Origin: Marsupella aquatica
Lineage: Eukaryota; Plantae; Marchantiophyta
Assembly (NCBI GenBank): GCA_973895155.1
Contig: OZ316897.1
Coordinates: forward strand, 15,561,375 to 15,625,374
Direction of reading: 5' to 3'
Length of the DNA stretch: 64,000 nt
Under the pieces are notes generated by a model that was given only the letters and a program-made list of their open reading frames with translations, had not been told where the DNA came from and did no database searches. Shown here piece after piece: positions 4,527 to 59,274 of this stretch (the first letter of the stretch is position 1; every line of letters starts with the position of its first letter). A program made the translations under genes and the position numbers.

Positions 4527-4852
4527 GGTTGCCCCTAATTGTTTATATTTTCCTTGTTTTGTCCCTATACTAAGGTGTTCCTAGGGTGCTTTCCTGCTTT
4601 ACCCACTTAACCGGCCGAGTGATTCCTGTCTAGGCATCACAACGTGTGACGGTTTGGGTCATTTATGACCCCCCTAAGTCACTTTCTAGAAAGTTGTATG
4701 ACACCAATCATGTGATGACACGTATGCATTTTGCAATTAAATAACCCTATATTTCCATAGAAGACTTAATAAGTCTTCCGCCAAAACCATTTAAATGGCC
4801 CTATACTTCGTCGCACATGATATGCCACTTCCATGGAAGTGACCCCCCCCCC

Positions 4853-31425: not shown

Positions 31426-34400
31426 TCAAATCAAGCCACCGATGGATCGATACCTTGGCCCACTAGAAAGATCTGCAGACCGCTCTTCCTTGATGGGTTG
31501 TAGAGTGTTTGACGAAGCTGGACCGGTTGCTACTGCATCTTGACTTGTTGGAGTCGAAGCCACGTCTTGTCGAACGAATGGATGATTGAGAAGTTCCGTA
31601 GCAGTTGGCCTCTTTGCGGGATTCACATCCAAACAGTGCTTGACGAAATCCTTAGCAGTTTCAGATAACGTATCGGGTATGGGTGGAGCGGTTCCATGTC
31701 CCACAGTCCACAATACTCGATACTGCAGAAGAAAAAATCTTGATCACAAATGGGAAACATTACAAACACCTAGCTTCTCAAGGCTCCCAATGATTACATT
31801 GATTTCCTGTAAAATCTTGCCGTCTCCTAACTCTCACCAGACTTTGCGATCTACGTGTCGTTCACATTCAAATACAACCAAGCGATCACTACAAATCAGA
31901 CACCCGCAATTTCCACCACGAGTAGTAAATCATATTGTCGCGCCCGCAGGAAGTAATCGAATTCAGCTTCTCCCATGAACCAGAAAACTTGGAATGCAAA
32001 TAGACACAATGACCACATAGTAAACCACCAACAATCGGATACTACCCAGTGTGGGCAATCACAAACCAAGCAGATTGCACAAACGCAGGACCTAACTGCA
32101 TGTAACTCAGGGGTAGGAATAAGCTGCAAGATCCGACACCGATCTGAATCCCATTGTGAGTTGTCTGCACGACTACGAGAACTAGAACTAAGTTGCACTC
32201 ACCCATTCCATGTCTCCAAAAGGAGGCGACCCAGTTGCCATCTCAAGAATACAACATCCCAGACTCCATATGTCGGCTGGAAGCCCGGAAAACTTTTTTG
32301 GATCAATGACCTGTAACGCAAACACCACATGACACACCGAACAAAAGATTCAACTCAGCCGCTGACGTCAAATTCCTTCAGACTTCAGATAAAACTGCCT
32401 ATTCGTCATATACACTTCTGGATATCAGGTAAGAAATAAGTGTTGCTGAAATTGAAGAAAACAGATGATATCACAGATCTTATCAGAAATAGATCAGGCT
32501 CACCTCTGGAGCCATCCAGTAAGCACTCCCTTTGCACGACTTCATCTGATCCAAACTATTCATCTGCAAAAGGTCCAAGTGTAAGACTATTTCAGGCCCA
32601 AAATGTTCAAAGCCTCGCCAAAAAATCAACGCCGCAGATATTACTCTATGCCAACCCCAACAAATAAAAATGTCCACTGAAGACATCAAACACAGATTTC
32701 ATCTCCGCAACGCAGATAAGATCAACAATGTACCTGTTTCGCCATGCCAAAATCGGCTACCTTGCATGTTCCATTTGTGTCAACAAGAATGTTTGCACAC
32801 TTAATATCCCTGCCCAGGATACAGCGTCGTCATCAGTAGATACACGATACAGAGCAGAATTCGCTCTAGGGACAAATGCCTTCGGAAAAGCCCTGCAAGA
32901 AAATCTAGAAATAGCGCCCAAGATCAAAAGTGATACGAACCTGTGCACAATATGTCGGTCATGGAGATATTTCAGGCCCTTCAAAATCTGCCTTGTGTAT
33001 GCACTAATTTGTGAGTGAGTCAGCTGAATTCTCTTACATATGGTTGCAAGTGATCCTTTGCTCACAAGCTCCAAGAAAATGTACAGTTTGCCATGTGCCT
33101 GAGGAAAAAGTTCGAGAAGTCAAAAATGGGCAACTTCTCCGGTTTACGTTGTCAAGACAATTTACTACGACCAGAACATGCGCATCATGAGATGGTCATT
33201 TTTAAACATAGGATAAACTATGGAGGCCTCCTGAAAAACAAGATGCCATTTCCAGGGAAACAGTTCAGCAGACCTTTTCCGTGCCTAGATACTGTACAAC
33301 GTTGTCGTGTTTGAACTGGCTCAACAGCTCAATTTCCTACCACAGCAACCATCGAAACAAGGGTAAACATGACAACACTGGGACCACCGGAAGAAACATG
33401 TAAAGAATATGTGTATATGACAGATGTCGAAGCACATAACACAGTTAGGGTCGAAATGAGGTCCTTCAAGTAAAGATTCGGATGCACAACCTTAAAGGAC
33501 AATTTAGACAAAACTACAAAGACGAAACTAATCCACGATACTTTGGTGCTTATCCAGTGTGAAGGGAAAGACATACCTGCATAAGCTGAGCAATACTTTG
33601 TTGCGCTTGTTTGTCTTGCTCGACCATAGAAACCTCTTTTACTGCAAACCACATCCCAACACTGGCCCACCAACCCACTGGTTATGATCATTGGAGTGAA
33701 AAACTCTCCACAGGTCAGAACCCTTGTGCAATTTATCCTAATCTGACAGCCTAACAACAACCAGGAATGTTTCCTGAGCTCGTAGAGTATTCAAGAAAAC
33801 CTTGATGACATCGGTGACTACATAGGCAAGTCAATACTACCTAAAGGTCGAACCACATTCTGATCATTTAATCGTCTGCGGATAGATTCACCGTTGACGT
33901 TCATGTTATGCCCCAAACTTACCCTTATCTACATACGATAGAACATTCCATTGCTCCCATAGCAAAAACTTGAATGCTGGAATGCATGACCACCGCTCAT
34001 TGTGCATCAAATCCTCATTCTACCAGTTGTAAGAATTCGAGAAAGCATGCACAATCGGTGGTCAGAGTGTTTACCTGTCAACGGCGTCGTAGACGGTTCC
34101 AAAAGAGCCCTGACCGAGTATGTCACCCTTGGACCACGGATGTTTTGGACCCAATACCACCACGGGGGTTTGAACAACCGGCGGTGGCAAGTCAGGTGTT
34201 AAATTCTCACCAACTTTGACATGCTCTACTGTACTAAGAATCCTCTCTGGCACGTCTACGGTGAGGTCGGTGCGTTTCCCCTGTCCGTTCCCGTCATTGG
34301 CAGCAACACCGCTCACATCTCCATTGCTTTGACCCTGTCCATTCTCTTCATCGGCAGCAACACCGCTCAAATTTCCGTTGCTTAAATGTTTGGACTGTTC

Positions 34401-35723
34401 AGGACTTGCACCAGAAACCGACGAACCAGCTTCAATAACGTGAGCCGAGTCCTGTTCATCGTCACTTTCAGACGCATTCTCCTTCTCGTCGTCACTTGCG
34501 CTGAAATACGAGCGAATGGCCTCTTCCGCTGCATCGGGTGCTAATGAACCCAAAATATCCTTTGTTGAGACTTGTTCCTGCGGAATTCTAAGTATACTCA
34601 TTCGAGGGGGGGGTTTCAGAACCATGGGTTGAGACTTGACATTATCTTTTAGTGGTCTCCGTCTTTCGGATGACAACGATGTAGTACTAACATCTGCGGT
34701 TACCTTCCCATGAGAAACCAAGACCCTGCTCGATCTGTCACTCACTGTCGGCGCTAATCCAACTTCAAGAGTCGTGCTCGGACTTTCACTGTCCTGATGG
34801 GTGGACTTGTTTTGTAATAACTCCCCATTATCTACAATGTCCACATGTTTCCAATTGAGACCACGTGACCCAACACTCTTGCCATTCAAAACTGATGTCT
34901 CGTCCCGCCTCGAGGGAGTAACAATGGGTATGGGTTCGCTCCGAGCCCGTTCTATTGGCTGAGCAACCACTACAGAAGCCATCCCTGTTCGCGACCTAAC
35001 AGAGGCTGCTCCTGGAGGACTTCGAGTATCCGCAGGGAAGGATCCAAGCCTGGGTATATCGCAATCTCCATGACTCATGATAAAATTCTCCACACCCGCT
35101 GCTTCGTCTTGAATTTTAGCCTGACGCTGAGCTTGCCTGACGACATTCGCAAAGCCCGGCAACACCCTGTCCTTATGTGCTGCTCCTCCATTACTCTCGC
35201 GGTTGAGGGCAGCTGCTCCAGCTGATGTTGGAGTCCTGTTCTCGACCTGAGCCCTGACCTTAGAGCCTGGTGGCGTTTGGATTAGCGGCGCTGGAAGAGC
35301 TGCATCAACTATCTCCGCCTCTGTACGAGCAAACTGCCCGACTACTGGTGGCGACTTCTGTGGAGAAAGGTAAGGAGGAGTAGTTTCCTGAGACGAAGTA
35401 GTTCGTCTGATCATTTCATAGTCTTCATTGTCAATACCCAGATTGGCTGGTCCGGGGAGGCCGAGGTACCTGAAAATACTGTTCATCTCCGCTACATCTT
35501 GCTTCCCGTGCACACTGAATTCCTCCAAGGCCCAATCACCTGAATGATGGGAGGACCTGTCGGAGTCATCGTCGTCATTATGGTGAAGAGTCTTGCTCGA
35601 TCGTCGCCGATAAGACCCGGTGGAATCGTAATCTATGCCTTTGTTGCCAAACGATCTATCTAATCTTGGCCGGGAGGCTCGCCCTGTGTGCGAGCTATGG
35701 CTGTGGCCTTTACTCGACGCCAT
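31426..35723 (-). CDS. MEKK1: Full-length MEKK1-like MAP kinase kinase kinase, copy 1, ~831 aa. Exons 35723-34075, 33661-33577, 33336-33274, 33098-32941, 32809-32734, 32563-32504, 32310-32203, 31722-31426.
   Basis: All kinase subdomains are present: [64 protein letters not shown]. All seven introns are GT-AG and the spliced length is 2,496 nt. There is a ~515-aa N-terminal region with 'RPRLDR...IDYD' and 'LKPPP' motifs typical of the plant MEKK1 clade. An in-frame upstream ATG at 35783 is an alternative start. The symbol denotes the clade, not proven orthology. Confidence 0.92.
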
Positions 35724-37870
35724 ACTTAGGAATTTTCTTCCCTTCTCCCTCCAATCAACGAACCCTGGATCCGTCAAGCTCATCTGCCCTACTCTTGTTC
35801 GCCTTTGTCGTTGCCACCAACAGCCAAATTCTTCCTTCTCTGCCGCCCACAACCCGACGCAGCGACAGTTGCTCGTAAGACATATTTCTACATGCCTAGT
35901 CCCCGGTTTTCAGCCACCCTAAACATCCTCACGCCCTGCCCAGCCGGGCCCTGCTCTGCCCCCACCTGCCTCTCCCTCTGTTTGTGCCTGCCTGTGAACT
36001 CACTAGCCACAGTGGCCATTCCACATTTTCCCCTGTTGCCTAATACTCTGGACCCAGTCCTACGCCTTGCCTCTAAGCTGCCGTTGCTGCTGCAGCAGCT
36101 CGCATATCACTCACATATTGTTTCGCCCCCGTCCTCCGCCTCCCCTCCTGCTACTTCCCTGGTTGCTCTACAGTCACCTCAAAGACGCCATGCGCAAACA
36201 ACCACTCCTTCCCGCTCCTCGTTCCCCTTATCGTCTCCTACCTCGCGTGGTACAGATGAGCTAATCCTGTAATCAAAACCTGCACCTGTATTTCCAATCT
36301 GCTCGATCAGACAACAACAGAGAAATCCGCCGTGGTGAGAATCCAGATCCTTCGAACCAGCTGAGACGAGAGCGTGTAACCACAAAAACGAGAAATCCTT
36401 CCAACTTTGAAAGCTAAAACCATTATTATCCCTAATCTTATATCCAGCACAAGGAATCCTCAACAACACCGAATCTTCCCACAGCACAGCACGTGACATC
36501 ATCAATCCAATTCATCACTCCATCATCCATGCTTACACGAGAAGACACGCTCGACGGTTGCGGCGCGGGTAGAAACAGACCTTGACGCTTCTCCCACCCT
36601 TCGTAACTCGTTCCTCTCGATCCCGGCAGGAACGCCAGCACAGAGATGGACAACTGCTGCGATACAAATCCGTCGGCAATCAATCAATCATCAACAATAA
36701 GTGCGATTATTATTCGCTGCGATACAAATCCTTCGTGAATCATATCAACTATAAGTTCCTTCATTATTCCGGCGGTCACACAGCGACACAACTCCGTTCC
36801 GTCCCGTCAGTCAAATCAACGAGAATAATCTAATCCGCCGGTCGTATACCGAGTCAACAACGCTTCGATCCGTCGATCGACCTGGCCCCCTCTCTCGTTA
36901 TTACTAGTTACAGTGGTCTACGACTCCGCCTTTCCTCGAAAGCGAGCTCCCTCCGCTCCTCTTTTCCGCACCACGACCTATCCTCCCCCTTTACCAATCT
37001 CCCCGTCATTAGACTACTGCTACGACGACTGTTTCTTTCTCCGAAGACTCCTTCACCTCCTCCACCTCCCTCCACCCTCCTCCTTTCCGCTCCTTCGTCT
37101 CCTTCGTCTCCTTCGTCTCATCGACGTCGCCCGCTCACACCTGCCTGCAGCAACCCGGCCTCTCCTCCGTGAACGTCAACTCCTCCTCCTCCTCCTTCTC
37201 CCGTCGCATCCGTCGTGAAGGAAGGATTCTCAGTTCTCACAGCACGAGAGCGCCCTTCGCCATCCGTCCCGATCCGCATGCTCTTCTCTCCGGCGACGTC
37301 AGTGAGGCGCACGGAAAGTCATCATCCAAAAGCAGCAGGGGGCCTGAATGGCGGCTCTTCTCTCTACTACTTGACAGTGCCCCTACTCCTGTGTCCTCCT
37401 GTGTACTCCTGTACTCCTGTAGGGGAGGGGTGTACCTCTCCCCTTCTCTCTTCCCTTCCCTCCTCTCCTCCTCTCCGGCTCTCCTCTCCTCTCTCTGCTG
37501 CCAATCTGGCGCTTTTGTCCGCTCTCTGTCTCGTTGGGGGCGAAAGCTCTCTCCTCTCTCTGCTGCCAATCTGGCGCTCTTTTGTCCGCTCTCTGTCTCG
37601 TTGGGGGCGAAAGCTGGGGCCAGAATAGCAGAGCTGGCACTCGCTTGTCTGGTCCGGCCTCGATTGCTTTCTAACAATTCTAAACAGGATCTCTCGACTC
37701 ACGAGTGAGTGCCTTCTGGCCACGCGACTGGACTGGACTCGACAGGACTGGACTGGACTGGACTGGACTGGAGCGGTGCGGTGCGGTGCGGTGGTGATGG
37801 TGCAGGTCAGAATCCTGGTCTGCAGGTGTGGTGCAGTCTGTCGCATCGCCCCCCTCGCCTGCTTGCATTC
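35724..37870 (-). promoter_or_regulatory. Long, probably intron-containing 5' leader and promoter region of MAPKKK copy 1
   Basis: GA-rich tracts on the minus strand. Candidate donors CAG|GTGTGAG (~37140) and AT|GTGAGT (36114), and acceptors at ~36268 and 35992. A ~68-bp tandem duplication at ~37482-37615 and (GACTG)n/(GCGGT)n microsatellites at ~37726-37792. Confidence 0.55.
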
Positions 37871-37889
37871 CTTCCTTCCTTCCTTCCTC

Positions 37890-38580
37890 CCCAGTCCCTC
37901 CCGTAGGACTCCGGTTACACGAGAGTGGTCCCTCCCTCCATCCCGAGTCCCTCCTGTAGGACTCCGGTTACACGAGGAGTGGTTGTGCTTGCTCCCCTCT
38001 GCCCTCTGGACGACTGGACTGTTCCCTAGGACTGCGGTAACTACACTAAAGTTGTGCTTGCTTGCCTCTGGAAGTAGTGGTCCCTAGGAGCGCACTCCTC
38101 CCGTACAGCGGTACAGAAGAATTATGCATGTTTTCCTCTGGACGACTGGACTAGTCCCTAGGACTCCGGTTATTGCACTAGGAGTTATGCTTGCTTGCAT
38201 CTGGACTCTGGAGTAGCCTCTACGACTACTGTATTCACGTGTATACTAGAGTTATGCGTGAGTACACTCGTAAAAGTTATGCTTGCTGGCTATGTACACT
38301 AGTCATAGTTATCCCTGCTTGCTTGCTTGCCTAGGACTATGGTAACTTCAATAGAGTTATGCTTCAGTTATGCTTGCTTGCCTTGCACTACGGTAACTTC
38401 ACTAGAGTTATGCTTGTTTGCTTCCCTACAGACAATGGTTTTTATTCTTTTTGTTTAAGGGGAATGGTAACTACGCTAGAGTTATTTCCTATTCTGGTAC
38501 TTGTTTGCCCATGGACTACAAAAAACTACACTAGAGTTATGCTTGCTTGCTTGCCTACAGACTACGGTAAGTATAGCTAG
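37890..38580. repeat. Degenerate minisatellite array
   Basis: Recurrent GACTACGGTAACTACACTAGAGTTATGCTTGCTTGCC-like units of variable length. Confidence 0.75.
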
Positions 38581-41500
38581 TAGAGTTGAGGCGGGTGTGC
38601 AAAACACGGGCAAGAGGCCGGGCCCATTGTTTCCTTTTATTCTCCTATGAGATTAAATCTGGACCGTTAATGAGTGGAAGTGGCTACTACTTGGATAAAA
38701 ACTTGGGGGCCCATTCAGGTATGGTGTCCAAGGGCCAAGACAACGCTGCTGTGGAAGACAGTTTTTGTCCTTTTGTATACAGGTGGTCCAAATGTTTACT
38801 AACTTTGGCTTTTTCATTCGAGAGAGTTGCAATTATGGAAGTTTTTCTTATTGAAGTTGGCTTCAAAAGATTTTTGGTCTAGAATCTATGGTCAGAACAA
38901 ATGTCGCCTTCTAATGTAGTTTGTTTTCACAAGTGGCCCCTATTTCTTGTAAACTCACCCTTATTTCCTTCCCATTTCCTTCTATACGATGAAACACGGA
39001 CATGAGATACAGTCTGCACTAGTGTTTTCTTTAGTGGCAAAAATTTGCCAAATTCCACCTCCCAAAAAATCTTTCACCACTTTTGGCAAAAATTGGTTAT
39101 TATGTTGCTCTCTCATTAGCCAGTGTTCCACCTAATCACAAGCCCCATTTTCCAGAATCTAAAGGTCAGCTTTAAATCTAGGGAGATCTGACAGTTAGGG
39201 ATATAATACAATAGGGAATCTTTTGAGCATCTTTGCATGCACACCCGGTACATTGGCATTTGCCACTCTGGCTAAAAATTAAAATCCTTAAAAAATAAGC
39301 TGGTCTGCACTACTCCGCAGTGTTGCACTAGACACCCTATTTGTGGGGTGAGATGCACGTCTGTTGTCTATGGAAACACTTCATCCAGCCCACCGCACCA
39401 CCTGCTCGTGTGTAGTATATTCTACAGAATCTGTGCCTTCTGTTCTTGCATGCATGAGACTACGTCCCAAATGTTCTCTTTGCGAAGTGGAAGCTTGTTG
39501 TCTAGAGCAATAAAGTAGAGAAGATTGAAGAGAGCACGTCATGGGCAGGACATTCTCACTTTATCTCGACACTCATGTAAGAAATTTATTGCAAATATCA
39601 CAATAAAGTTAACACTCTCCCTCCTGTCAGGAGTTGTCCAAAATGAAAGCCCTCGCCCCTCGGGAAGACAGCCCTAGTGCCTTTCTAACCTACGACGATT
39701 CTCTCCTGGGAGATCTTTTACCTAAAGCTCAAACCCCTTCGTCCTATCGTATTATATTTCTCTTTAGAGAGGTATTTTTCGTTTGATGAGCTTACCAGGT
39801 CCAGCCCTGATTGCTTCAGAACTTTTTCCACACCCCTTATCTTTTATTAAATTATTACTTTGCTTTATGGGAATACATTGATGGTTCCAATCCCAGCAGA
39901 TTAGATAAAGGTTAGTCCATCTCCTTTGATCTTATGTTTTCCTTTTAGGTGTCTTTTCCTGAACTTATGGGTTAATCATAATTAAGCCCAATGTGATATC
40001 AGAGGTATGCTTGGAACTAATACACATGTACTTTTCAAAACTTAGGGAAGCTCAGTGTCCAATTACATAATCACACTGTGAACCTACTCGTCATGTCCTA
40101 TTGTCAGGTCAAGTGAAGTCTCTAAACCGAGACACATGGGGCATAACTGAAGTTTGGGATGCGGGTGGAATATGGGGATTGGGGGCAAGGTGAGTCCATG
40201 AATATGGCGCAGCATGTGAGGAGTCACTGGAAACCAATTGAACCATGAATCGGTAAACACCAAAGGGCTTCAATGTCCTGGCCCGGGGTTATGGCCTCTA
40301 GTTACGTTCAAAGAATGGGCCTTCACCCCTTACCCCACCATGCAATCTTGGCTCTAAACTATAGCCTTGCTAAGATATACATCTGAAATATTTTTGGTTT
40401 TAATGTAATTATTATACATTCTCTGACAAATGCAATAAAATGTACCTGTGCAATCTGATCGGCCAATTTTGGCTGACAGAATGGCCTAACCTTGTCCATA
40501 TTTGCTTTTGCATCAAACCATCTTTTCCTCCATGATTATAGAGAAAACTGAAGATACTAATGTCCATGTATGGGGTTCCCAAAGGGGTTAGAGCATCTCC
40601 AACCATGGGCTGCAAAGGCAAGGTCCCTCCTCGGGTCCCTCAGAATCCAACAAGAATGGAACAAGGGCATAATTAGCAACACCCAGCTGTTCAACATGAT
40701 ACCTCATGTTACCCCTAGCATGATAACTCGTGCATCTCAATTATGAGGGGTTTTAACCAGAACGAAAGGACAAAATGCTAGAGGTCACCTTTGCTCAACC
40801 ATTCCGGATCCACAGGTCCATTGAGAGTGTCCCCTGATTAAAAAAAGGTGCTCAGGTAATGTATTAAATATTAGTTGACAGGATGAGAAGCAACTGAGAG
40901 GTCCTTTCAAAATTCCAGAGCCGGTTTCAGAGGTGGTCTAAATTTTGGCCAAAACTACACAGTACACATAAGGCATAGTTGTTTTCCAAAACATACTCTT
41001 CTTGGAAACCCCACAGAAAGGGAACAATCAGTCACAAAATTCTAACCCAAGACCTACCAATCTTCACTCAAGTGAAATACCACACAACCATGCTTTTCAC
41101 TAAACTTTTGTCAAAACGATTCAAACAAAACATTTGGTTTTTAGTATCTCTGCAGAAGTATTCAGATTCCAAATTAACTTGAAACTATTTTTGCCACCTT
41201 TTGGTATATATGCCATTTACTACATTGTCACCATTTCTGGGGTCAGACTATATTGTTTGCCACTCTTTTTGATCTAATTGTTATGTTGCCATCTTTTTCC
41301 ATCATTGATTAAGCATTGTAACTCTGTTCAGCTTGGAATGAGATGATAATCAATATCTTGCTAGGTTTTTGCATTAAAGGGTCCTCACCGTCCTTAACAA
41401 GGATGAGGCCAAGCCATACTAACCAATGACTTTTCCACATTTCCCTAAACTTTTAGACGTGCATCCAGAAATCCAGGATCATTCTGGAATTCCAAAGAGT

Positions 41501-41642
41501 TACAATTGAAGGCATGGCTTGAGACCTAATTAACATGGTGGTGGCTACTGTATTTAGGGTGGCGGCTGAATGAAAAGGAAGGAAATAGGTACATGCCATG
41601 AGATTGAGATGAAAAGGTAACCCCTGCCTTATGGGCGGGTCA

Positions 41643-41666
41643 ACCCCCCCCCCCCCCCCCCCCCCC
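41643..41666. repeat. Poly(C) run of ~23 nt
   Basis: Seen directly in the sequence. Confidence 0.9.
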
Positions 41667-47179: not shown

Positions 47180-47580
47180 AACGCAACTCCCCTTTTTATA
47201 TTCCCACTTTTGAATTCCTTGTAATGATTTTATTTCCAATTGACCATGCCAAGCTTCACTTTAGTCTATTACATTCTTGTACCTCTCAACTCAAGAATCC
47301 AAATATGTAACTTGAAGACAAACAAAACTTGTTTGTGCATGTAAAGTTTTTATCAAAACCAAATTATATGGTTTTTAATACTGGGGTCTACAGACAAACT
47401 AGCCAACATTTTAGTATTTCTATAACATTTAAAAAAAATTCAATCAAGATTACAAGAAGTTTAGTAATAGTTTTATTCTTATGTTGTAAAAGAAGAAAAT
47501 CAAACTTTGTATGACTCAAAAAGTTTTTAAGCCAAAAAGCCAACGTTTGCAATTTTTTATTTTCAGTGGGTATAAATGTA
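47180..47580 (+). repeat. Dispersed AT-rich repeat, homologous in direct orientation to ~63620-64000
   Basis: Shared blocks CCAATTGACCATGC, CTTGTACCTCTCAACT..GAATCCAA, ATCAAAACCAAATTATAT and GGGGTCTA..CAAACTAGCCA. Confidence 0.7.
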
Positions 47581-49111
47581 GATCTCTGTCTATTATACAA
47601 GAGTTGCAATGTTCCTTCATGCAAATATGTTATTGTTATCCCTAAATCAATTTTTACCAATTTTTTTCCTTTTTCTTTTTAGAAAAGGCGACAGTGCGCA
47701 AACTATTTTCAAAAGAACCTCAGCAAAAAACTAGCGGCAAAAAGAACAACAAACTCAATTTTTACTCAATAACAGCGGTGCTGCAAATATATTCTTGCTG
47801 TTCCTAAATCAGTTTTTACTCAATAACAGCAGTGCATGAAACCATACAATCCGCAGTCAGGAACAAAAATGCAAGTATTGTGTCAATGATGCCAAGATAA
47901 ATTTTATTTGATGCATGCACCAAAAACCAATTGTTCAAATGTATTGATGGAGCAATGAAATAGAAGCACTTAATTATATTGAAAATTATTGAGAGTGTTA
48001 TCTTAGAGCAAGTGTTATCTTAGAGCAATCCCCCTGAGTGGTTGTCCTCAACAGCTGGCCGATAAGGTATTCAGCATGACCGGAAGAAAACAGCCCGTCT
48101 GGAATCCCCCACTGGAACTCAGAATTTCTCCAGGAGGCCTCCCTCATCAATAAAATTCCCTCCCTTGTGCCAACCTTGCCTGCACTCTCACTATCGCACG
48201 GTGTCCAGCAAGCCAAGGCTTTAATTAGCTGAGACTCGCTCTCCTTGAATGACTGTGGTGATACGATTGAGCTCTACTGCACCTTCAACTTGTGGGCCCA
48301 CTGCTGCATGCTGGACAAGTACTTCCACCAGGGGTTCTTCAAAATTATGGATGATGGCATTTGGTCGTAAAGGAATTATCTAGATTTTTCACCAACCACT
48401 AGAGTGATTGACTGATGGTAGTGGCATAAAATTGAATCCTTGTGACAAAAAGTTATGGACTATGAATTTCATAAAGTGTTTGTATCCATAACCCATAACT
48501 AGGGAGTTAAGGGCCCCCTACTATGCCAATGGCAAACTAGCAAATAAAGAGACAAAAATTTCACATTGGAAGAGTTGAAGCAATTCTCTGTAGTTCTCGG
48601 ATACACTTTTTGCAGGATCCCATCATTGGAAATGGGCAGAAGAATGGAGCCCAAAGACCTCTCTATCTCTTCTCATTCTCTTAGGAAACTATTAGCTTAT
48701 GTCAAGAGTGTAGTTTTGGCCAAAGTCTAGACAACCTATCATTCTATGCTCAGCCTGCCAGTACACTATTAAATGGACTACATACCTGGCACTTTTGGGT
48801 CTCCTAATTGACATGTACCTGACCACCACCACCTTTCCGATCAAGAGAATCTAAATGGACCTCTGGATCCACAGGGCTGGTATCTTACTACATAATTGCC
48901 AACAGAAGCTACTTTTGAGGGTTATTGTCTAGAGTGAAGCATCTAGACACTCTAGGCTCTAACTCAAATAAAGACAAAATGTATAATGATTCTGAATAAG
49001 ACAAATGTGCACCAAAAAATAGATTTGCAAAGATAACTGAATATAGTTTTTTTTTTTCAATTCTATTTAAGTTCAAGAAGTAGTCAGGCTACCGTAGTAG
49101 TGAAACTATGG

Positions 49112-49259
49112 TGCTGAGAAAACAGAAGGACCTCTTGTTCCTATGAAGTGAGTTGTAAATTTTGTATATATGGCACTGCTGAGAAAACAGAAGGACCTCT
49201 TGTTCCTATGAAGTGAGTTGTAAATTTTGTATATATCGCACTGCTGAGAAAACAGAAGG
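49112..49259. repeat. ~65-bp tandem repeat (2 units plus a partial unit)
   Basis: TGCTGAGAAAACAGAAGGACCTCTTGTTCCTATGAAGTGAGTTGTAAATTTTGTATATAT is repeated. Confidence 0.9.
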
Positions 49260-49733
49260 CGCCCAACCGGGAGAAATCATCTTACCCGAATGAGACACAA
49301 TAGAGCCCGGAGAGGAAACAAAGGAAGACCCAAGGACGACCACGGAGCCGAGAAGTCCTGAATGACTCCACGAAAGTCCCCCAAAACAACAACCACCTAA
49401 AACCGTTGGCAAACTGGCAGGCCAGACAGAGCTTATTATGGCTCCTGCGGCAACTACAACTATCACTTCAGTGCGACTGACTGGCGAAGGCCAGAACGCT
49501 GCGAGATTCATTGTTGAAGGCCACCACCTATTGCACAAAACCCGTTCCAATGATTAAACTCGTTAGGATAGAGAAACCCATTCCAATGATCTAAGTCGTT
49601 AGGATAGAGAGTAAAGGGTACTCCATATGCAAACCCCATCGAAACACCACAGTCAAAAATTAAACCTATCCAAAGGCACCCAAATACTTTTATCCGTAGA
49701 AATCAAAGCGTTTTCAACCCTCTTGAATATATA

Positions 49734-52682
49734 TCAATACATGCCACCGATGGATCGACAGTACCTTGGCCTACTAGGAAAATGTGCACACCGCTCGTCC
49801 GCGATGGGTTGTTGAGTGTTTGACAACGCCTGACAGGTTGCTAGTGCATCTTCACTTGTTGGAGTCAGAGCCACGTCTTGTCGAACGAATGGATGATTGA
49901 GAAGTTCCGTAGCAGTTGACCTCTTTGCAGGATTCACATCCAAACAGTGCTTTACGAAATCCTTGGCAGTTTCAGATAATGTATCGGGTATAGGTGGAGC
50001 GGTTCCATGTCCCACAGTCCACAAGACTTGATACTGCAGAAGCAAAAATCTTGATCACAAAGGGGAAATATTACAAACAGCTTCTCAAGGCTGACAATGA
50101 TTAATTTAATTTCTCACAAAATCTTGCCATCCCTTGAATCTCACCACGCTCTGCAATCAACGTGGCAGTCACACTAAAATATAACCAAAGATAACTACAA
50201 TCAGACACCCGCAGTTAATATTGTCGCGCCCACCGACGCTAATCGAATTCAGCTTCTCCCATGAATAAAAAAAAGCAACACATTGACTACGCAGGCAACG
50301 ACCAACAATTGGATACTACCTAGTCGGTGCAATCGCAAACCAAGCAGATTGCAGAAACGCATTACCTAACTATATCTAACTCAAGCTGAGGAATTAGGTG
50401 CGATATTGGACACCGATCTGAATTCCAATGTGAGTTGTCTGTACGGCTGCGAGAACGAAAATAAACTTGCACTCACCCATGCCATGTCTCCAAAAGGACG
50501 CGACCGAGTTTCCATCTCAAGAATGCAACACCCCAAACTCCATATGTCGGCTGGAAGCCCGGAAAACGATTTTGGATCAATGACCTGTAACCGCAAACAC
50601 CACATGAGACACCGCACAAAAGGCTCAATTCAGTAACTCACAGCCAATTCCTTCAGGGCTGAGCTAAACCAGCCTACTTATCATATAGTCTTCTGCATAT
50701 AAGCTAAGAAAAAGATGTTGCTGAATTTAAGAGAACAGACAATATCACAGATCGTATCAGAGATAGATCGGGCTCACCTCTGGAGCCATCCAGTGAGCAC
50801 TCCCTTTGCACGACTTCATCTGCTCCAAACTACTTATCTGCGAACGGTCAAGTGTAAGAATATTTCAGGGTCAAAATGTTCACAGCCTCCCCAAGAAATC
50901 AACACCGCGGATATTACTCAATGGCAGCACAACCTAAACAAAAAGGTCACTAAAACCGTCAAACATAGATTTAACCTTCGCAACGCAGATAAGATCAACA
51001 ATGTACCTGTTTCGCCATGCCGAAATCGGCCAGCTTACATGTTCCATTTGTATCAACAAGAATGTTTGCACACTTGATATCCCTGCTCAGAACACAGTGT
51101 CGGCATCAGTAGACATATAATACAGAGCAGAAATCGCTCTAGCGACAAATACCTTCGGAGAAACCCTGCCAGAAAATCTAGGAATAGCGCGCACGATCGA
51201 ACGTGTTACGAACCTGTGCGCAATATGTTGGTCATGGAGAAATTTCAGGCCCTTCAGAATCTGCCTTGTGTATGCACTAATTTGTGAGTGAGTCAGCTTA
51301 ATTCTCTTGCATATGGTTGCAAGTGATCCTTGGCTCACGAGCTCCAAGAATATGTACAGTTTGCCATGTGCCTGAGGAAAAAAGTTCGAGAAGTAAAAAT
51401 GGGCATCTTCTTCAGACTACGTTGTCAAGACAATTTACTTCGACCAGAACATGCGCATCACGAGATTATCATTTTAAGAATTTGATAAAACTAAGGAGGC
51501 TCCTCAAACAAGATGCCGCGGCCAGGTAAACAGTTCAGCAGACCTTTTCCGTGCCTAGATACTGTACAACGTTGTCGTGTTTGAACTGGCTCAACAGCTC
51601 AATTTCCTGCCACAGCAACCATCGAAATAAGGCAAGCATGACAACATAGGGACCACCAGAAGAACAATGTAAAGGATATGCATATGCAACAATCCAAACA
51701 GATCTCGAAGACCGTAACACGTTGTCCACGATTTAGGGTGGAAATGGGGTCGTTCAGGTACTCATTCGGATCCACTACTCCGGCATTTCTTCTAAAGTGA
51801 CGAGTAATTGTCAAGAAATTCAGTAGCCTGTGCCGAACTGTTTTCAATGTAATTAGTGGTAAATTGACATGACATGTAAACCGTTCCGAACATGTTCTCC
51901 CACCAGATTTTCTACAGCTTAGACCCTGTTACAAGTCTGAAAATGGGAATGCACCCTCCAGCACTTCAGGTAGCAAACTTGACTTGAAGGTGCAGTGCAT
52001 CAATGCACATGCATTCCGTTACCACCTTAATGGGGACATTAATAGAAAACGAAAATAATCCACGATATTTCGATACTTATCCTGTGTGCGGGTAAACCTA
52101 GACATACCTGCATAAGCTGAGCAATACTTTGCTGCGCTTGATTGTCTTGCTCAACTATAGAAACCTCTTTTACTGCAAACCACATCCCATCACTGGCCCA
52201 GCAACCCACTGGTTACGATCATTGGGGTGGACGAGCTTCCACAGGTCATTTGACAGATCAAAATCTGACAGCCTAATAACAACCAGGATATGTTTCCTTC
52301 GGCTCGTAAAGCATTGAAGGAAGCTTGATGACTTCAGTGACTGCAAAGGCAAGCCAATACTACTTAAAAGTGGGACCACATTGTGATATTTTAATTTTGC
52401 AGATCGATTCAACGTCCAAAGTTACCCTTATCTACATACCATAGAACATTCTCTTCTTCCCATAGCACAAATTTCAATGCTTGAACGCATGACGACCGCC
52501 CATTGTGCCTCAAATTCTCATCTACCAGTAACAAGAGTTCGTGCATACGGAATCGGTAGCCAGAGTGTTTACCTGTCAACCGCGTCGTAGACGGTTCCAA
52601 AAGAGCCCTGACCGAGAATGTCGCCCTTGGACCACGGATGTTTTGGACCCATTGCCACCAGGGGGCCTTCAACTGGTATCAT
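49734..52682 (-). CDS. Kinase-domain-only MEKK1-like MAPKKK, copy 2, 319 aa. Exons 52682-52573, 52192-52108, 51606-51544, 51371-51214, 51082-51007, 50837-50778, 50584-50477, 50033-49734.
   Basis: Starts [31 protein letters not shown]. Internal exon sizes (85/63/158/76/60/108) are identical to copy 1. All introns are GT-AG and the 960-nt frame is open. K, E, HRD, DFG and APE are intact. Confidence 0.85.
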
Positions 52683-53488
52683 ATTGTTTCGCCCAGCCCT
52701 CCTCCTCCCATAAGCTATTTCCCTGGTGGCGCTACAATTATCGCAAAGACTTCATGCGCAAAAACCACCTCCTTGCCGCTCCTCGTCCCCCTTACCGTCC
52801 CCTACCCCGCCTAGTACAGAAAAGCTGATCCTGTAATCAAACCTGCACCTGTGGGTCCGATCTGCTCTATCAGACAACAGCACAGAAATCCGGAGTAGTG
52901 AGATTTTAAGTCCTTACCAGCTGAGATGAGAGAGAGTAACCAGAAACACAAGAAATCCTTCAAACTTTGGAAGCTAAGGCCATAACCATCACCCCTCATC
53001 ATCTATCCAGCACAAGGGATTCTCAAACAACATGGAATCCAATTCACCACTCCCTCATGCATGCTTACACGAGAAAATACGCTCGACGGCACCAACTAGA
53101 CACAGCCACACAACTCCGTTCTGGTCCGTCAGTCAAACAACAAGAATAATAAAACTCCTCCATCGGTCAATCGGCCTGGCCTCCTGTCTTGTTACTAGTT
53201 TACGACTATGGCCCCCTCAAAAAAGTGAACTCTCTTCCCTCCTTGTGATTACACGACGACTATCCTCCCCTTTCCACCAATCTCTGTCTCTCTCTCCGCG
53301 TTATCTACCTACTGTAGTACTACGACTATTTCCTTCTGGAGAAACCACCCTGCACCTTTTCGTTCACCTCGTCGATCTCTCCAGCTGATACCTGCTTGCA
53401 CACTTGGAACTGATACACGTGTGTATATTGGTTCATCATGATTGTGTTGCCGATACACAAATGCACTGCATCTTTGACTACTTCCAGG

Positions 53489-53980
53489 TCATCCCTGTCC
53501 CATCCATGTGCAAAGATGACCTTGTGTATAAGATGCATGTCATCCCTGTCCCATCCATGTGCAGGAGCATTTAGAACTTGATTGTGTTCTTTATTTTCTT
53601 TCATGCATAGTTAAGGGACTACCCACTTTTGGTGGGATGTGTTCTTTATTTTCTTTCATGCACAGTTAAGGGACTACCCACTTTTGGTGGGATGTGTTCT
53701 TTATTTTCTTTCATGCATAGTTAAACCACACCTGCCACTATAAAAGCTTCATTCCATGTCTCATTACTCACCATAAAAGATGGAAACCTAGCACCTTTTG
53801 TAGAAACCTAGCACCTTTTGTAGAGTACTTGCAAATTTATTTTTTTGCAGTCAGCACTTTTTGTGGAGCTCAAAACCCATTTTTTGAACTTGTACTCTTT
53901 AGAATGAGAGCTACGGGTTACCCGTAGTCCTTTATAGGGGCAGATGTGGTTTAAGGGACTGCCCACTTTTGGCGGGATTA
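53489..53980. repeat. Cluster of short tandem duplications upstream of copy 2
   Basis: TCATCCCTGTCCCATCCATGTGCA x2. A ~55-bp unit TGTGTTCTTTATTTTCTTTCATGCATAGTTAAGGGACTACCCACTTTTGGTGGGA x2.5, with an echo at ~53951. GAAACCTAGCACCTTTTGTA x2. Confidence 0.8.
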
Positions 53981-56157
53981 GATACTACAGTACTTGATGT
54001 GATGGACTATGTCACTCCATACCATGATAAACCAAGATATTCTGTTTGCTTTGATGGTTCCAATGGCATGTGGGATAGCTTTGGGTAATTGCACATAAAT
54101 ATGTGATATTATATGGTGTACAAAGTCCCTCAATCCATACCATAATAGACCAAAATATCTTGTTTCAATCACAAAGTGTTAGTCTAAATAGGTATCTGGT
54201 TGTCAGTTTTTTTATGCGCAATTACTGGGGACACTTGCAGGGATGGGGGGAGAGTCCTTATACCCATTATTTTGTCATCGTTGTCTTTTTTTACAGGGGG
54301 TGTCTCTTGACAGATTGGGAGTGTTGCACTACTTAATGCCCTTTGTGATTTTTCCATCCAACTTTATTTTCCAGTGCATTATTTCTTGCAGGAGAATGCC
54401 AGGTCAAGATTTGGGTCACATCTTCTTGTCTACTTTTACTAAGAATAGAAAATTAAATAATGTATCAGGGGCCTTTAAGTGTATTAAGGCCCTGGTTTGC
54501 ATAGAATTATGGGCAATAAAAGACCCCCTCAAAACTTGAACTTCAAATATCCCATAATGCTCTGTAAACAGTACATTCAGGGTCTACAGCTCAGCCATGC
54601 AATGAACTACACTGTTCACATTCAGGGTCTATTCACAAATTAGTGTTAGTCACACTAATTTTGAACTACCACTATTTCCGCCCACATGAAGTAGTGATAC
54701 TGTGGTATCAAGAGTGGGAAATTAGAGGGGGGAAAAAACTATTTTGAAAAAATACACATGAATTAGAGTTACATTGGACTCAAGATCATCCATTTTTACT
54801 AGCAGTTTGAACAAAAGTGGAAAAACACTATTCTGAGAAACCTACAAAAATTAGTGTTACTTGGACTCAATCAGTTCTACCAGAATTAGTGTTAGTAACA
54901 CTAACTATGGTGAACAGTGTAGCTACTGTAGCCATATGGAGTCTTAGAAGTGCACTAGAAATACAAAAGTCAGCCAAAATCATAAGTCTTAAAAAAACAT
55001 TTGCAGTAATTGATCCAGTGCCCCGGAAACTTTTTAACAGCCAGATCTTCAAGCTAGAAGGAAGTCATGGAGGAGAAGGTGAAGAATCACCCCAACTAAG
55101 TTGGCAATGCTTTGCAATGGAATGGGGTTTCAAATGACTCGCTTTTCCATGCCATATGGAGTGCAAGTGGATAGACGGTTCTAAGATGTAAACATTAAGT
55201 CATGGTGGTGGATGTGCTGATCAAACAGAGACGGACACTGTTCAAATCTCAACTGAAAGCCTGCTTCATCTCCTCTAGGGTGAGACTTTGCCCCACAATT
55301 TCAGGTAAAAGGTACTAAAAATGGTGAAACCTGGTGTGGGACCTGGTGGATCTAGGTTTTGGCATGGACAGTGGCGCTTTAAAACCAATGATTGGCCTCT
55401 GCCCTACAAAAGTATAGTGAATGACAATAAAAGTGCAAACATGATTCAAATCAAGATGCAAACTCTCCTCACTGTTGACCATTTTCTTTACCCTGCTCAC
55501 CGTCTACTCTTCCCTGCTGATACATTCCACTCCCCACTGTCATATGTATCATCTGAGCAGAAATTAGGGTTTCCCGGTCCATTCCGGGTCCAAAGTGCAT
55601 CCCAATGTTTCGAAAAGATAGAGGTCCATCCACACTTCTACATCTCAAAAGTTGCCTACAAATATACTCTATCATTCAAAACAATTTAGGGAAAAACCCA
55701 GGAAGACCAAGCCAAAAGCCCTGGAGTCCCCAATGAAAGTGAAAGCATCCCCCACACCAGAAACTAAAAACCTTGAACCCTTGGCAAATTGAAAGGCAGG
55801 ACAAAACTCAGGTGTAAATAGAATTGTGCATAGTCCATGGCTCCCATGGCAACTAGAATTATCAATTGGGTGAGACTGATTGTTGAAGGCGAGAACACTG
55901 TAAGATTCATTGTTGGAGCCCACCACCTATTGCACAAAACCCCATTCCAAATCTAAGTCATTAGGATAGAGAGTTTAGGGTACTCCGTATGCCATCCCCC
56001 ATCAAAAACAACGCAGTCAAAAATTTCAAGGAAGCAAAATATTTATTATCCATAAATTAAGACATTGTAACCTCCGCCTAACTACAAACCAATACAAGCC
56101 ACCGAGGGATGAAGAGTACCTTCAGTTGGCCCGACTAGAAAAATGTGCCTTGACAGG

Positions 56158-59100
56158 TTATAGAGTGTTTGATGAAGCTTGAAAGGTTCCTACTCCATCA
56201 ACACTTGTTGGAGTCGGAGCCACGTCTTGTCGAACGAATGGATGATTGAGAAGTTCCGTAGCAGTTGGCCTCCTTGCGGGATTCACATCCAAACATTGCT
56301 TGACGAAATCCTTAGCAGTTTCGGATAAAGTGTCGGGTATGGGTGGAGCAGTTCCATGTCCCACAGTCCACAAAACTCGATACTGCAGAAGCAAAAATCT
56401 TGATCACAAAGGGGAAACCTTACAAACACCTAGCTTCTCAAGGCGGACACTGATTACATTGATTTCCTACAAAACCTTGCCATCTCCAACTTTCACCATG
56501 CTCGGCAATCAGCGTGTCATTCACACTAAAATACCACCAAAAGACCACTACAAATCAGACACCTGCAGTTATGAACCAGCATTAGCAAATGATATGTTGT
56601 GACCACAACAAAGTAATTAATCCAATGCAGCTTCTCCCATGAATAAGAAAACTTGGAATACAAATGGACACACTGACTATGTAGTTAACCACCAACAATT
56701 GGATACTTACCAGTTGTGGCAATCACAAACCCAGCAGATTGCACAAGGCATGACCTAATTGCATGCAACTCAGAGGGAGGAATTAGGTGCAAGATCGCAC
56801 ACCGATCAGAATTCCAATGTGAGTCATGGCTGCGAGACCAGAATCAAGCTGAGCTCACCCATTCCATATCTCCAAAAGGAGGCGACCCCGTTGCCATCTC
56901 AAGAATACAGCACCCCAGGCTCCATATATCGGCTGGAAGCCCGGAAGACTTTCTTGGATCAATAACCTGCAATGCAAATACCACATGAGAAACCGCACAA
57001 AACATTCAACTTAGTTGCCATCTCAAGGATGCACCACCACAGACTCCATAGGTATGCTGGAAGCCCAGAAGTTTTTCAGGGATCAATCACCTCTAACGCA
57101 AACACCACATGAAATATTGCACAAAAGGGTTCAATTTTTATAATTGACATCAAATTCTTTTAGGCTTGAGACAAACCAGCCTATTAGTCACGTAGACTTC
57201 TCCATATCAACTAAGAAATAGATGTTGAATAGATAATATATATCATAGATATCTTGTGCATACATAACATGCACTGCCGCTTGTCACCTATATCCAACCA
57301 TGGGCACAATCTAACATCACAAATACAATAAATTTGAGTACAAATGTACCTCATGTACACATGCACCAAACACACAATAATTTTCCCTAACTAAGTCATA
57401 TGACCAATATTACCAACCTCAACTCAATCCAATGGCATCAACATGTCAAGTCAAATGCACCTTGCACTTCAATAAATTTATCATCATATATACACAACCT
57501 GGCTAGCTACACCATAATTGCCAAAACTTGTGCTTGAAAGGCTCAACATCAAAAAATTGTCTTTTGAGTCACCACAAGGGGATACATAATTATCTCTCAA
57601 ACACAAAATAACATTCAACGAATACACATATGAAAGCACTATACCTATGTAACGCAATGTATTATCACACTACTTGGAATCGTATGATAGCCATTATATC
57701 ACAAGATAGATCGGGCTCACCTCTGGAGCCATCCAGTAAGCACTCGCTTTGCATGACTTATTCTGGTCCAAATTATTCATCTGGAAAAGGTTCAAGTGTC
57801 AGACCATTTCAGGATCGAAATGTGCAGTCTCCCCAATATATCAATGCCGCTGATATTACTCAATGCCACCCCCACCTAAACAAAAAGTTCACTAAAAATG
57901 TCAAACATAGATTCCATTTCCGCAGCGCCGAAAAGATCAACAATGTACCTGTATCGCCATTCCAAAATCTGCCAGCTTACATGTTCCGTTTGTGTCAATA
58001 AGAATGTTTGCACACTTGATATCCCTGCTCAGAACACAGTGTGGGCATCAGTAAATATATGCTACAGAGCAGAATTCGCTCTAGCAACAAATGCCTGCGG
58101 AAAAACCCTGCAAGAAAATCTACAAATAGCTAGCTAGCATGATCGAAAGTGATACGAACCTGTGCACAATACTTCGATCATGGAGATATGCGAGGCCCTT
58201 CAAAATCTGCCTTGTGTATGCACTAATTTGCGAGTGAGTCAGCTGAATACTCTTGCATATGGTTGCAAGTGATCCTCGGCTCACGATCTCCAAGAATATG
58301 TACAGTTTGCCATGTGCCTGAGGAAAAAAGTTCGACAAGTAAAAATGGGCATCTTCTTCAGACTACGTTGTCAAGACAATTTACTTCAACCAGAACATGC
58401 GCATCACGAGATGATCATTTTAAGAATTTGATAAACTAAGGAGGCTCCTCAAACAAGATGCCGTGGCCAGGTTAACTGCAGACCTTTTCCGTGCCTAGAT
58501 ACTGTACAACGTTGTCGTGTTTGAACTGGCTCAACAGCTCAATTTCCTGCCACAGCAACCATCGAAATAAGGCAAGCCTGACAACATAGGGACCACCAGA
58601 AGAACAATGTGAAGAATATGCATACATGACAATTGAAACAGATCTCGAAGACCGTAATACGTTGCCACAGTTAGGATCGAAATGAGGTCCATCAGGTTCT
58701 TCGAAAGTGACGAGTAATTGTGAAGAAATTCACTAGGCTGTGCCGAACTATTTTCAATGTAATTACTGGTAATAAGAATAAGGTACTGTATCAAACTTGT
58801 CTTGAGGATGCAGTGCATCAATGCACATTTCGGCACCACTTCAATAGGCACTTTAGACAATATTAAAAAGACGGAAAAAATCCACGATATTTTGAGACTT
58901 ATCCAGAGTGCGGGAGTATCCATACCCAGACATACCTGCATAAGCTGAGCAATATTTTGTTGCGCTTCATTGTCTTGCTCGACTATAGAAACCTCTTTTA
59001 CTGCAAACCACATCCCATCACTGGCCCACCAACCCACTGGTTATGATCATTGGAGTGGACGACCTTCCACAGCTCAGAAGTCTTGCGCAACTTACCGCAC

Positions 59101-59274
59101 ATTGTGCCTCAAATCCTCATTCTACCAGTAGTAAGAGTTCGTGCACATGGAATCGGTGGTACGTCAGAGTGTTTACCTGTCAACCGCGTCGTACACGGGT
59201 CCAAAAGCGCCCTCACCGAGCACATCACCCTTAGCCCAGGGATGTTTTGGACCAACAACCGGTGGCGGTCTCAT
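56158..59274 (-). CDS. Kinase-domain-only MEKK1-like MAPKKK, copy 3, 290 aa. Exons 59274-59177, 59020-58936, 58546-58484, 58317-58160, 58024-57949, 57780-57721, 56966-56859, 56382-56158.
   Basis: Starts [27 protein letters not shown]. Internal exon sizes match copy 1. All introns are GT-AG and the 873-nt frame is open. The C-terminal tail is shortened by CAA>TAA at 56158-56160, after the kinase domain. Confidence 0.82.
57013..57090 (-). pseudogene. Decayed partial duplicate of exon 7 inside intron 6 of copy 3
   Basis: Translates as [25 protein letters not shown]. The acceptor TACAG has become TAGAG, and there is no donor. Confidence 0.8.

Follow-up and report, generated by a model that had tools for sequence, protein, structure and literature searches.

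What becomes of a MEKK1 paralog that keeps the kinase domain and loses the region in front of it? MEKK1 is a MAPKKK with a central place in immunity and stress, and in Arabidopsis its tandem paralog MEKK2 has been recruited into an NLR-guarded circuit. The window examined here, a stretch of 64,000 nucleotides from Marsupella aquatica, carries three MEKK1-family paralogs on the minus strand, namely a full-length gene (c1) and two kinase-only copies (c2 and c3). Judged from sequence, the probability is roughly 60% that selection maintains c2 and c3 as protein-coding genes, each encoding a bare MEKK1-type catalytic domain, and both copies are likely to be functional as kinase-only paralogs. A lineage that diverged early among land plants would then have derived a different type of paralog from the MEKK1 locus, a bare catalytic domain of the form that researchers construct deliberately to obtain constitutively active MAPKKKs, with two natural copies kept readable by selection.

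The three-gene array had been predicted to extend from a read-through stop of c1 at 31426 to the ATG of c3 at 59274. These coordinates, together with the internal exon sizes and the intron sizes, were reproduced in base-level gene models (Table 1). GT-AG boundaries are present at all 21 introns compared (7 per gene) and every frame is open. The predicted organization of eight coding exons and seven GT-AG introns applies to c2 and c3 but not to c1, which has a ninth coding exon after a 482-nt GT-AG intron. By tblastn (E 7.5e-5) exon 9 matches the C-terminal end of the orthologous Calypogeia protein, and in tblastn the Calypogeia fissa protein P0001 (935 aa) matches c1 across the entire P0001 length. 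Database searches were run exon-wise or with database proteins, and the spliced c1, c2 and c3 proteins were assembled for alignment, dN/dS and the tree. Pfam detected Pkinase on exons 4 and 8 of c1 and, exon by exon, on the c2 and c3 exons, and zero domains on the 612-aa N-terminal reading frame.

Table 1. Positions of the MEKK1-type genes and related features in the window.
Feature	Position	Strand	Details
c1, full-length MEKK1-type gene	30917..35783	-	9 coding exons, 860 aa, 8 introns
c1 exons 1-5	35783-34075, 33661-33577, 33336-33274, 33098-32941, 32809-32734	-	exons 1-7: 1709/85/63/158/76/60/108
c1 exons 6-9	32563-32504, 32310-32203, 31722-31454, 30971-30917	-	introns 1-7: 413/240/175/131/170/193/480
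c1 stretch missing from c2 and c3, ~1.92 kb	34191..36113	-	blastn and base-level junction reading
c1 upstream leader/promoter region	36114..36870	-	retained by c2 and c3; ATG-TGA 36116-36111; 5-codon uORF 36191-36174
c2, kinase-only copy	49734..52682	-	8 exons, 319 aa
c2 exons 1-4	52682-52573, 52192-52108, 51606-51544, 51371-51214	-	exons 1-8: 110/85/63/158/76/60/108/300
c2 exons 5-8	51082-51007, 50837-50778, 50584-50477, 50033-49734	-	introns 1-7: 380/501/172/131/169/193/443
c2 leader, homologous to c1 leader	52683..53150	-	uORF 52755-52738
c3, kinase-only copy	56158..59274	-	8 exons, 290 aa, early stop in C-terminal tail
c3 exons 1-4	59274-59177, 59020-58936, 58546-58484, 58317-58160	-	exons 1-8: 98/85/63/158/76/60/108/225
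c3 exons 5-8	58024-57949, 57780-57721, 56966-56859, 56382-56158	-	introns 1-7: 156/389/166/135/168/754/476
c3 leader, homologous to c1 leader	59275..59961	-	uORF 59349-59332
Decayed partial tandem duplicate of exon 7 and its acceptor, inside c3 intron 6	57014..57126	-	in-frame stop, no donor site

The assignment to the MEKK1 family was supported. The MEKK-subfamily signature is G(T/S)Px(F/W)MAPEV (PMC5025453). It is found in c1, c2 and c3 (G-S-A-H-W-MAPEV in c2), with its Pro changed to Ala in the array and likewise in the Calypogeia, Riccia and Ceratopteris relatives. The closest relatives and the tree position lie among proteins named MAPKKK1, names given automatically by their sources, in a tree built without another MEKK subgroup as outgroup. 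In an alignment of c1 with proteins of Riccia, Selaginella, Magnolia, Oryza and Brassica, the N-terminal motifs RxxLxR...Y, which is basic, and FR(I/V)xG...LG(L/I)xGP are present in c1; c2 and c3 lack both. Because these motifs are common to the MAPKKK1-like proteins of all five genera, the region deleted from the copies is ancestral.

The c2 and c3 proteins begin 7-13 residues ahead of the kinase domain. The catalytic motifs are whole in all three genes (GxGxxG, the VAIK Lys, the alphaC Glu, HRD, DFG and APE). The expectation that exon indels preserve the frame was borne out, every one being a multiple of 3; just upstream of the kinase domain c2 is without 2 codons and c3 without 7. In addition to the N-terminal region the copies lack c1 exon 9, homology ending 90 nt into intron 8, and are thus cut at both ends. 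They have also lost the 3' UTR and terminator of the parent along with its last exon, which counts against their being maintained genes. In c3 a stop lies 25 codons ahead of the point where c1 exon 8 ends, and the exon 7 duplicate in intron 6 (TRF period 124, 1.9 copies; self-blast 79.6% identity) forms a competing acceptor leading into a stop, which counts on the same side. On the other side, the used exon 7 of c3 is preserved whereas the unused duplicate has decayed; when both were compared with c1 along the first 76 nt of exon 7, the duplicate carried 16 differences and the used exon 7.

How the copies lost their N-terminal region can be read at the junction. In blastn both skip from c1 ~36114 to c1 ~34175-34187. 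The missing stretch comprises 330 nt of leader (or leader intron) and ~531 codons of the N-terminal regulatory region, so that the predicted loss is confirmed and its size adjusted from ~515 aa. A GTGAGT at 36114 may mark the start of an intron in the c1 leader. The start ATG of c2 and c3 is inherited from the 5' leader of the parent, and a single ~1.92-kb deletion joined it to about codon 532. The c1 leader region is 74.6-76.1% identical to c2 52680-53089 and c3 59269-59961 (blastn). The sequence of events was that a segment of the parent locus, from the promoter and leader through 90 nt inside intron 8, was copied; that the deletion then took the remaining leader and the N-terminal codons, so that the leader ATG, which in the parent is followed directly by TGA as a start-stop, came to lie in frame ahead of the kinase domain; and that a second duplication of this derived unit gave c2 and c3. 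A single origin of the two follows from their common junction and from their clustering in introns and on the tree. A retrocopy or processed pseudogene was rejected as the source, since the copies retain the parental upstream region and every one of the seven introns. The copies branch within a liverwort clade on the tree, in agreement with the predicted lineage-specific array that arose independently of Arabidopsis MEKK1/2/3, and on the tree the origin of c2 and c3 postdates the split from Calypogeia.

Purifying selection on both copies, proposed in the original prediction together with a dN/dS comparison, was upheld by a branch codon model, in which omega=1 was rejected for c2 (omega 0.39, p=0.012), for c3 (omega 0.35, p=0.0006) and for the two jointly (p=1e-4); such tests average across the whole history of the genes, and present-day function is beyond their reach. 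The strong divergence of the introns was likewise confirmed, although not as a matter of indels only: aligned intron sites are 17-22% diverged, against 6-10% in exons. Over 1590 aligned nt of intron, c2 and c3 differ by 25 indels whose length is not divisible by 3. At intron rates ~13 frameshifts are expected in the 849-nt coding region, versus 0 observed between c2 and c3. Simulation at the intron substitution rate gave a probability of ~0.08 per copy of remaining free of stops and predicted ~46 amino-acid changes, whereas 19 (c2) and 25 (c3) were observed.

The copies had been called intact, which holds for frames, splice sites and catalytic motifs, but the last coding exon is missing and the proteins of both copies evolve 4-10 times as fast as that of c1. 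Tajima tests of c1 against a copy counted 4 changes vs 16 in one comparison (p=0.007) and 2 vs 21 in the other (p=7e-5). In the branch codon model omega did not differ significantly between parent and copies (p=0.72), so that the acceleration is visible in the rate and not in omega. At 117 conserved columns c3 departs from the family 11 times, c2 8 times and c1 6 times. The rate, these departures and omega values of 0.35-0.39, high for a kinase domain, all count against the copies being maintained genes. In the 27-residue activation segment c1 equals Calypogeia and four replacements are found in each of c2 and c3, an enrichment that is not significant (p=0.14, 0.25).

If c2 and c3 are maintained, each would yield a catalytically competent MAPKKK module without the N-terminal region, which bears regulation and MPK4 binding in Arabidopsis MEKK1-family proteins. 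Its activity would then be set chiefly by the amount made, and the copies retain a parent-type promoter and leader with the conserved 5-codon uORF. Its targets, whether acted on or competed for, would be the MAPKKs used by the parent. For a member of the MEKK1/MAPKKK1 group these are expected to be MKK1/2-type MAPKKs upstream of an MPK4-type MAPK. Among functional roles, an active kinase serving as an extra input is a tentative proposal, held at somewhat less than even odds, and the roles of activator, competitor or effector decoy are speculation by analogy. The deltaN-MEKK1 and NPK1/ANP kinase-only constructs are engineered constitutively active MAPKKKs. They resemble c2 and c3 in retaining the kinase domain and lacking the regulatory region N-terminal to it, but they are laboratory constructs, whereas the deletion in c2 and c3 is natural, old and under selection. 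CA-YDA belongs with these engineered N-terminal deletions. It is cited as a constitutively active form (PMC7591502). By this analogy c2 and c3 may be constitutively active.

Rather less likely is that c2 and c3 function without catalysis, either as competitors that keep MAPKKs away from the parent or as immune proteins that serve as decoys or are guarded, comparable with the structural role reported for Arabidopsis MEKK2. The immune role of MEKK2 is independent of its kinase activity, and the MEKK2 kinase domain has an inhibitory effect on MPK4 activation (PMC8998894, PMC7519094). The faster evolution of both copies and the replacements in their activation segments would suit such a role. The Arabidopsis MEKK1-MEKK2-MEKK3 array (MEKK2 is SUMM1; the MEKK1-MKK1/2-MPK4 cascade is guarded by SUMM2) also consists of tandem MEKK1-family MAPKKK duplicates at one locus, and both arrays combine a conserved parent, faster-evolving paralogs and a kinase domain of the same family. 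The liverwort array differs in its independent origin and, further, in that neither c2 nor c3 has the N-terminal domain with which MEKK2 binds MPK4 (PMC8998894). Because the MPK4-binding part of MEKK2 is the part missing from the copies, the analogy is weak in mechanism. An immune paralog of the MEKK2 type would activate an NLR guard (SUMM2 in Arabidopsis) in dependence on its abundance. In the 64-kb window we saw no NLR or other guard candidate, and both copies have retained every catalytic residue after ~7-8% neutral divergence per branch, a retention that a purely structural role does not require and that disfavours it.

It is less probable again that the two copies are partial duplicates that lack expression or have recently died, once constrained and now decaying. 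The missing last exon and 3' end, the accelerated protein evolution, the tail stop and partial exon 7 duplicate of c3, and the ratio of c3 changes in exons (51/852 sites) to those in introns (108/1454), ~0.8, are what decay would leave. Against it stand the rejection of omega=1 for each copy, the absence of the expected frameshifts, the retention of all 28 splice sites (14 per copy), the low neutral probability of stop-free frames, and contigs identical to the window in both organisms among the sequencing reads. The read comparison used four DNA-like runs, which come from two studies and represent two organisms, and took in 50440-56420 at a 90% threshold, a span that contains c2 exons 1-7 and c3 exon 8. 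At this threshold contigs of paralogs cross-map, and rows from all four runs change c2 residues to c1 residues, so that only variants specific to organism B, a related sample, are informative, and even those may stem from another copy. In organism B there is a second, diverged version in which the c2 start reads ATG>ATA, at 52680, and c3 exon 8 has a 1-nt deletion, at 56319. Cross-mapping being possible at 90%, this version may carry a c2 start loss and a c3 deletion, that is, disabling variants. We counted these variants against the copies being maintained genes.

Least probable by far is that repeated gene conversion from the functional parent c1, and not selection on the copies, has kept the frames open. 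Conversion is at work in the array: c2 and c3 differ by 3.6% in intron 3, compared with 14-26% in other introns, exon 3 is identical in all three genes, and dS between c1 and the copies, 0.12-0.20, is below the intron distance of 0.23-0.26. Conversion would homogenise introns too, yet exons are gene-wide ~2-3 times better conserved than their flanking introns, c2 and c3 each have many private replacements, and the clear tract links c2 with c3, not c1 as donor.

Should the copies be expressed, c2 and c3 would be a natural experiment on the role of the MEKK1 N-terminal region and would show MAPK cascades gaining new inputs or decoys outside flowering plants; should they be silent, they would be an ordinary instance of partial duplicates in slow decay. 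A second leafy liverwort provides a comparison. Calypogeia fissa has kinase-only MEKK1 paralogs, P0005 (327 aa, CAM6112336) and P0099 (230 aa, CAM6107939), at both homeologous MEKK1 loci, which suggests that kinase-only MEKK1 genes can be retained. Like c2 and c3 they consist of the kinase domain only and are linked to full-length MEKK1 (P0261, P0001), sharing its chromosome-scale contig at a distance of 10-14 accession numbers, as judged from accession order; unlike c2 and c3 they are not adjacent to it. Their truncation is independent, because the N-terminal breakpoint and the leader peptide differ from those of c2 and c3. A bolder and unlikely extension is that leafy liverworts repeatedly evolve and keep N-terminally deleted MEKK1 kinases adjacent or linked to the full-length gene, having done so independently at least twice (in the Calypogeia lineage and in the present array), and that these form a layer of regulated bypass or bait on top of the MEKK1 cascade in which the dose of a constitutively competent module would be set via the inherited promoter and uORF leader. 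The Calypogeia kinase-only lineage is older and much more diverged, with 73% identity to the full-length kinase domain and a branch of 0.33, and a Tyr-to-His change before MAPEV is common to its members and c2.

A reading-frame scan and a self-comparison revealed three homologous minus-strand units in the window: c1, the full-length MEKK1-type parent gene, and c2 and c3, the kinase-only copies. Only one close relative emerged for the long reading frame that opens unit 1, the full-length Calypogeia fissa MEKK1 P0001 (935 aa, E 5.5e-218), with 62% identity across the N-terminal part. Splice sites were positioned by frame and score with P0001 as guide. GT-AG borders were present at 21/21 introns (introns 1-7 of each gene) and every frame was open. 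The internal exons measure 85, 63, 158, 76, 60 and 108 nt in all three genes, and an exon-by-exon Pfam search detected a protein kinase domain in each. These exon sizes and the intron lengths reproduce those of the original prediction, which had described an eight-exon array with open frames and GT-AG introns 1-7; the exon number of the parent had to be revised. A small extra exon of c1 is matched by the Calypogeia C-terminus (E 7.5e-5) and is preceded by a 482-nt GT-AG intron with its donor directly after the residues SSGP. This brings the parent to nine coding exons and 860 aa. The homology of c2 and c3 to c1 stops at 31364, 90 nt inside intron 8, and no copy of exon 9 was found downstream of c2 or c3, so that the copies are also cut at the 3' end. 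c2 would terminate by read-through into the intron remnant and c3 at an earlier tail stop.

Coordinates of the kinase genes, their leaders and other features of the window
Feature	Position	Strand	Details
c1	30917-35783	-	start codon 35783; 860 aa, 9 exons; introns 1-7: 413/240/175/131/170/193/480 nt
c2	49734-52682	-	start codon 52682; 319 aa; introns 1-7: 380/501/172/131/169/193/443 nt
c3	56158-59274	-	start codon 59274; 290 aa; introns 1-7: 156/389/166/135/168/754/476 nt
c1 exon 9	30971-30917	-	
c1 leader ATG-TGA	36116-36111	-	ATG at 36116-36114
Leader uORF, c1	36191-36174	-	5 codons
Leader uORF, c2	52755-52738	-	5 codons
Leader uORF, c3	59349-59332	-	5 codons
c2 intron 3	51372-51543	-	
c3 intron 3	58318-58483	-	
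c2 exon 6	50837-50778	-	
Deep stretches	53640-54040, 54640-55040, 55240-55440		
Inverted repeat	17863-19333 / 61183-62675		1.5 kb
Aspartyl protease gene	22205-23815	+	TAXi_N/TAXi_C (nepenthesin/CND41-like) type; two long reading frames
Retrotransposon fragment	4817-5709	+	RT-RNase H domains

c2 and c3 are each preceded by 0.4-0.7 kb of sequence with 75-76% identity to c1 36114-36870, after which the alignment skips to c1 ~34187. Read base by base, the junction in both copies is ...AACAAT ATG, continuing in frame with the c1 residues immediately before the kinase domain. The equivalent ATG in the c1 leader is directly followed by TGA, 330 nt upstream of the true start. The junction together with this ATG-TGA shows that a single ~1.92-kb deletion took the remaining leader and ~531 codons and made the leader ATG a start codon. 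In c1, the G of this ATG opens GTGAGT, a possible donor site for an intron in the leader. Each of the three leaders retains a uORF (M-x-S-L-R-stop) ~60 nt upstream of the ATG. The common junction, the tree and the closer c2-c3 introns (p=0.166 vs 0.194 and 0.217 to c1) indicate that the deletion happened once and that a second duplication came after it. The lost N-terminal part is ancestral: the c1 N-terminus carries two motifs common to MAPKKK1-like proteins of Riccia, Selaginella, Magnolia, Oryza and Brassica.

Relatives were sought with two queries: P0001 in a full HMMER scan, and the best short match from that scan in a word-indexed search. Calypogeia fissa has its own kinase-only genes, P0005 (CAM6112336, 327 aa) and P0099 (CAM6107939, 230 aa), each sharing a chromosome-scale contig with a full-length gene, P0261 at a distance of 10 accession numbers and P0001 at 14, respectively. 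P0261 and P0001 are 94% identical and lie on different chromosome-scale contigs. In the tree (P0005,(P0001,(c1,(c2,c3)))), P0005 and P0099 branch before the P0001-c1 split and c2 and c3 after it; Marchantiopsida proteins (Riccia, Marchantia paleacea) are sister to the group of Calypogeia and c1, c2 and c3. This order, and N-terminal ends of P0005 and P0099 unlike those of c2 and c3, show that leafy liverworts gained kinase-only MEKK1 paralogs on at least two occasions. At the aromatic position before W-MAPEV, c2 (exon 6), P0005 and P0099 carry His in place of the Tyr of c3 and every full-length relative examined, which might reflect parallel evolution.

c2 and c3 retain every catalytic motif intact. 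Measured against 117 columns that are conserved among 20 relatives, c1, c2 and c3 show 6, 8 and 11 departures, none at a catalytic residue. Pairwise dN/dS was 0.29-0.42 over 283 codons. A self-written three-branch codon model gave omega values of 0.30 (c1 plus stem), 0.39 (c2) and 0.35 (c3), with omega=1 rejected at p=0.027, 0.012 and 0.0006, respectively, and at p=1e-4 for c2 and c3 jointly. The c2-c3 introns hold 31 indels in 1590 aligned nt, and 25 of these have lengths not divisible by three; on that basis 13.3 frameshifts were expected in the 849-nt coding region and none was observed (P about 2e-6). Simulation at the intron substitution rate gave a probability of 0.08 per copy of having no stop and ~46 expected amino-acid changes; 19 were observed in c2 and 25 in c3. 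Omega below 1, the absence of frameshifts and the deficit of amino-acid changes therefore indicate that both copies were constrained as proteins through most of their history, and the purifying selection originally proposed for them is borne out. A useful internal control lies in c3 intron 6 (754 nt), where part of exon 7 has been tandemly duplicated together with its acceptor; the duplicate is now 20% diverged and has an in-frame stop. Within the initial 76 nt of exon 7, this decayed duplicate differs from c1 at 16 positions and the c3 exon in use at 7. The constraint on c2 and c3 is relaxed. With Calypogeia as outgroup, changed sites numbered 4 in c1 vs 16 in c2 (p=0.007) and 2 in c1 vs 21 in c3 (p=7e-5), and the exon/intron ratio of per-site change increased from ~0.2 on c1 plus stem to ~0.5 in c2 and ~0.8 in c3.

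We put at about 0.6 the probability that c2 and c3 are functional kinase-only genes with the predicted kinase activity. Their proteins would be made, would be active without the N-terminal region and would touch the parent's cascade. Their architecture resembles that of engineered constitutively active MAPKKKs, among them the N-terminal deletion deltaN-MEKK1. CA-YDA is likewise an engineered N-terminal deletion with constitutive activity (PMC7591502). Alternatively, the copies, with catalytic residues intact, could act as a non-catalytic competitor or decoy. In the Arabidopsis MEKK1/2/3 tandem, the role of MEKK2 is structural and its N-terminal domain binds MPK4 (PMC8998894, PMC7519094), whereas c2 and c3 lack that domain and are therefore not MEKK2-like in mechanism. 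Recent pseudogenes are a further alternative, to be weighed against the long-kept frames and alongside variants among sequencing runs. The sequencing runs in which the stretch was found comprised four DNA-like runs from two organisms and no RNA run; the four were mapped to 50440-56420. Organism A yielded contigs that match the window exactly. Organism B (runs X3 and X4) yielded such exact matches and also a second version, which is ~7% diverged between genes (54034-54394, for example, has 25-26 differences and 9 gaps), so that the sample may be hybrid, polyploid or mixed. Calypogeia likewise has two full-length genes on different contigs. Variants confined to organism B include two synonymous substitutions in c2, several clustered changes at the c2 start, among them ATG>ATA, where a second in-frame ATG persists 10 codons downstream, and, at partial depth, a deletion of 1 nt from c3 exon 8. 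The ATG>ATA change and the deletion may be disabling variants of a related genome or subgenome, or may reflect cross-mapping or another copy; if truly disabling, they are among the findings that the original prediction named as refuting it. Maintenance by gene conversion, the remaining alternative and a process visible in the nearly identical intron 3 of c2 and c3 (3.6% divergence vs 14-26% in other introns), which with exon 3, identical in c1, c2 and c3, looks like a local conversion tract, cannot account for the exon-specific conservation.

Between c2 and c3, the contig depth of three stretches runs to thousands in each of the four runs, vs 15-100 in adjacent DNA; they are inserted high-copy repeats, probably small transposable elements. 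An inverted repeat, 75.7% identical and with many tandem units of 17-19 nt and 35 nt, flanks the aspartyl protease gene and the entire kinase array.
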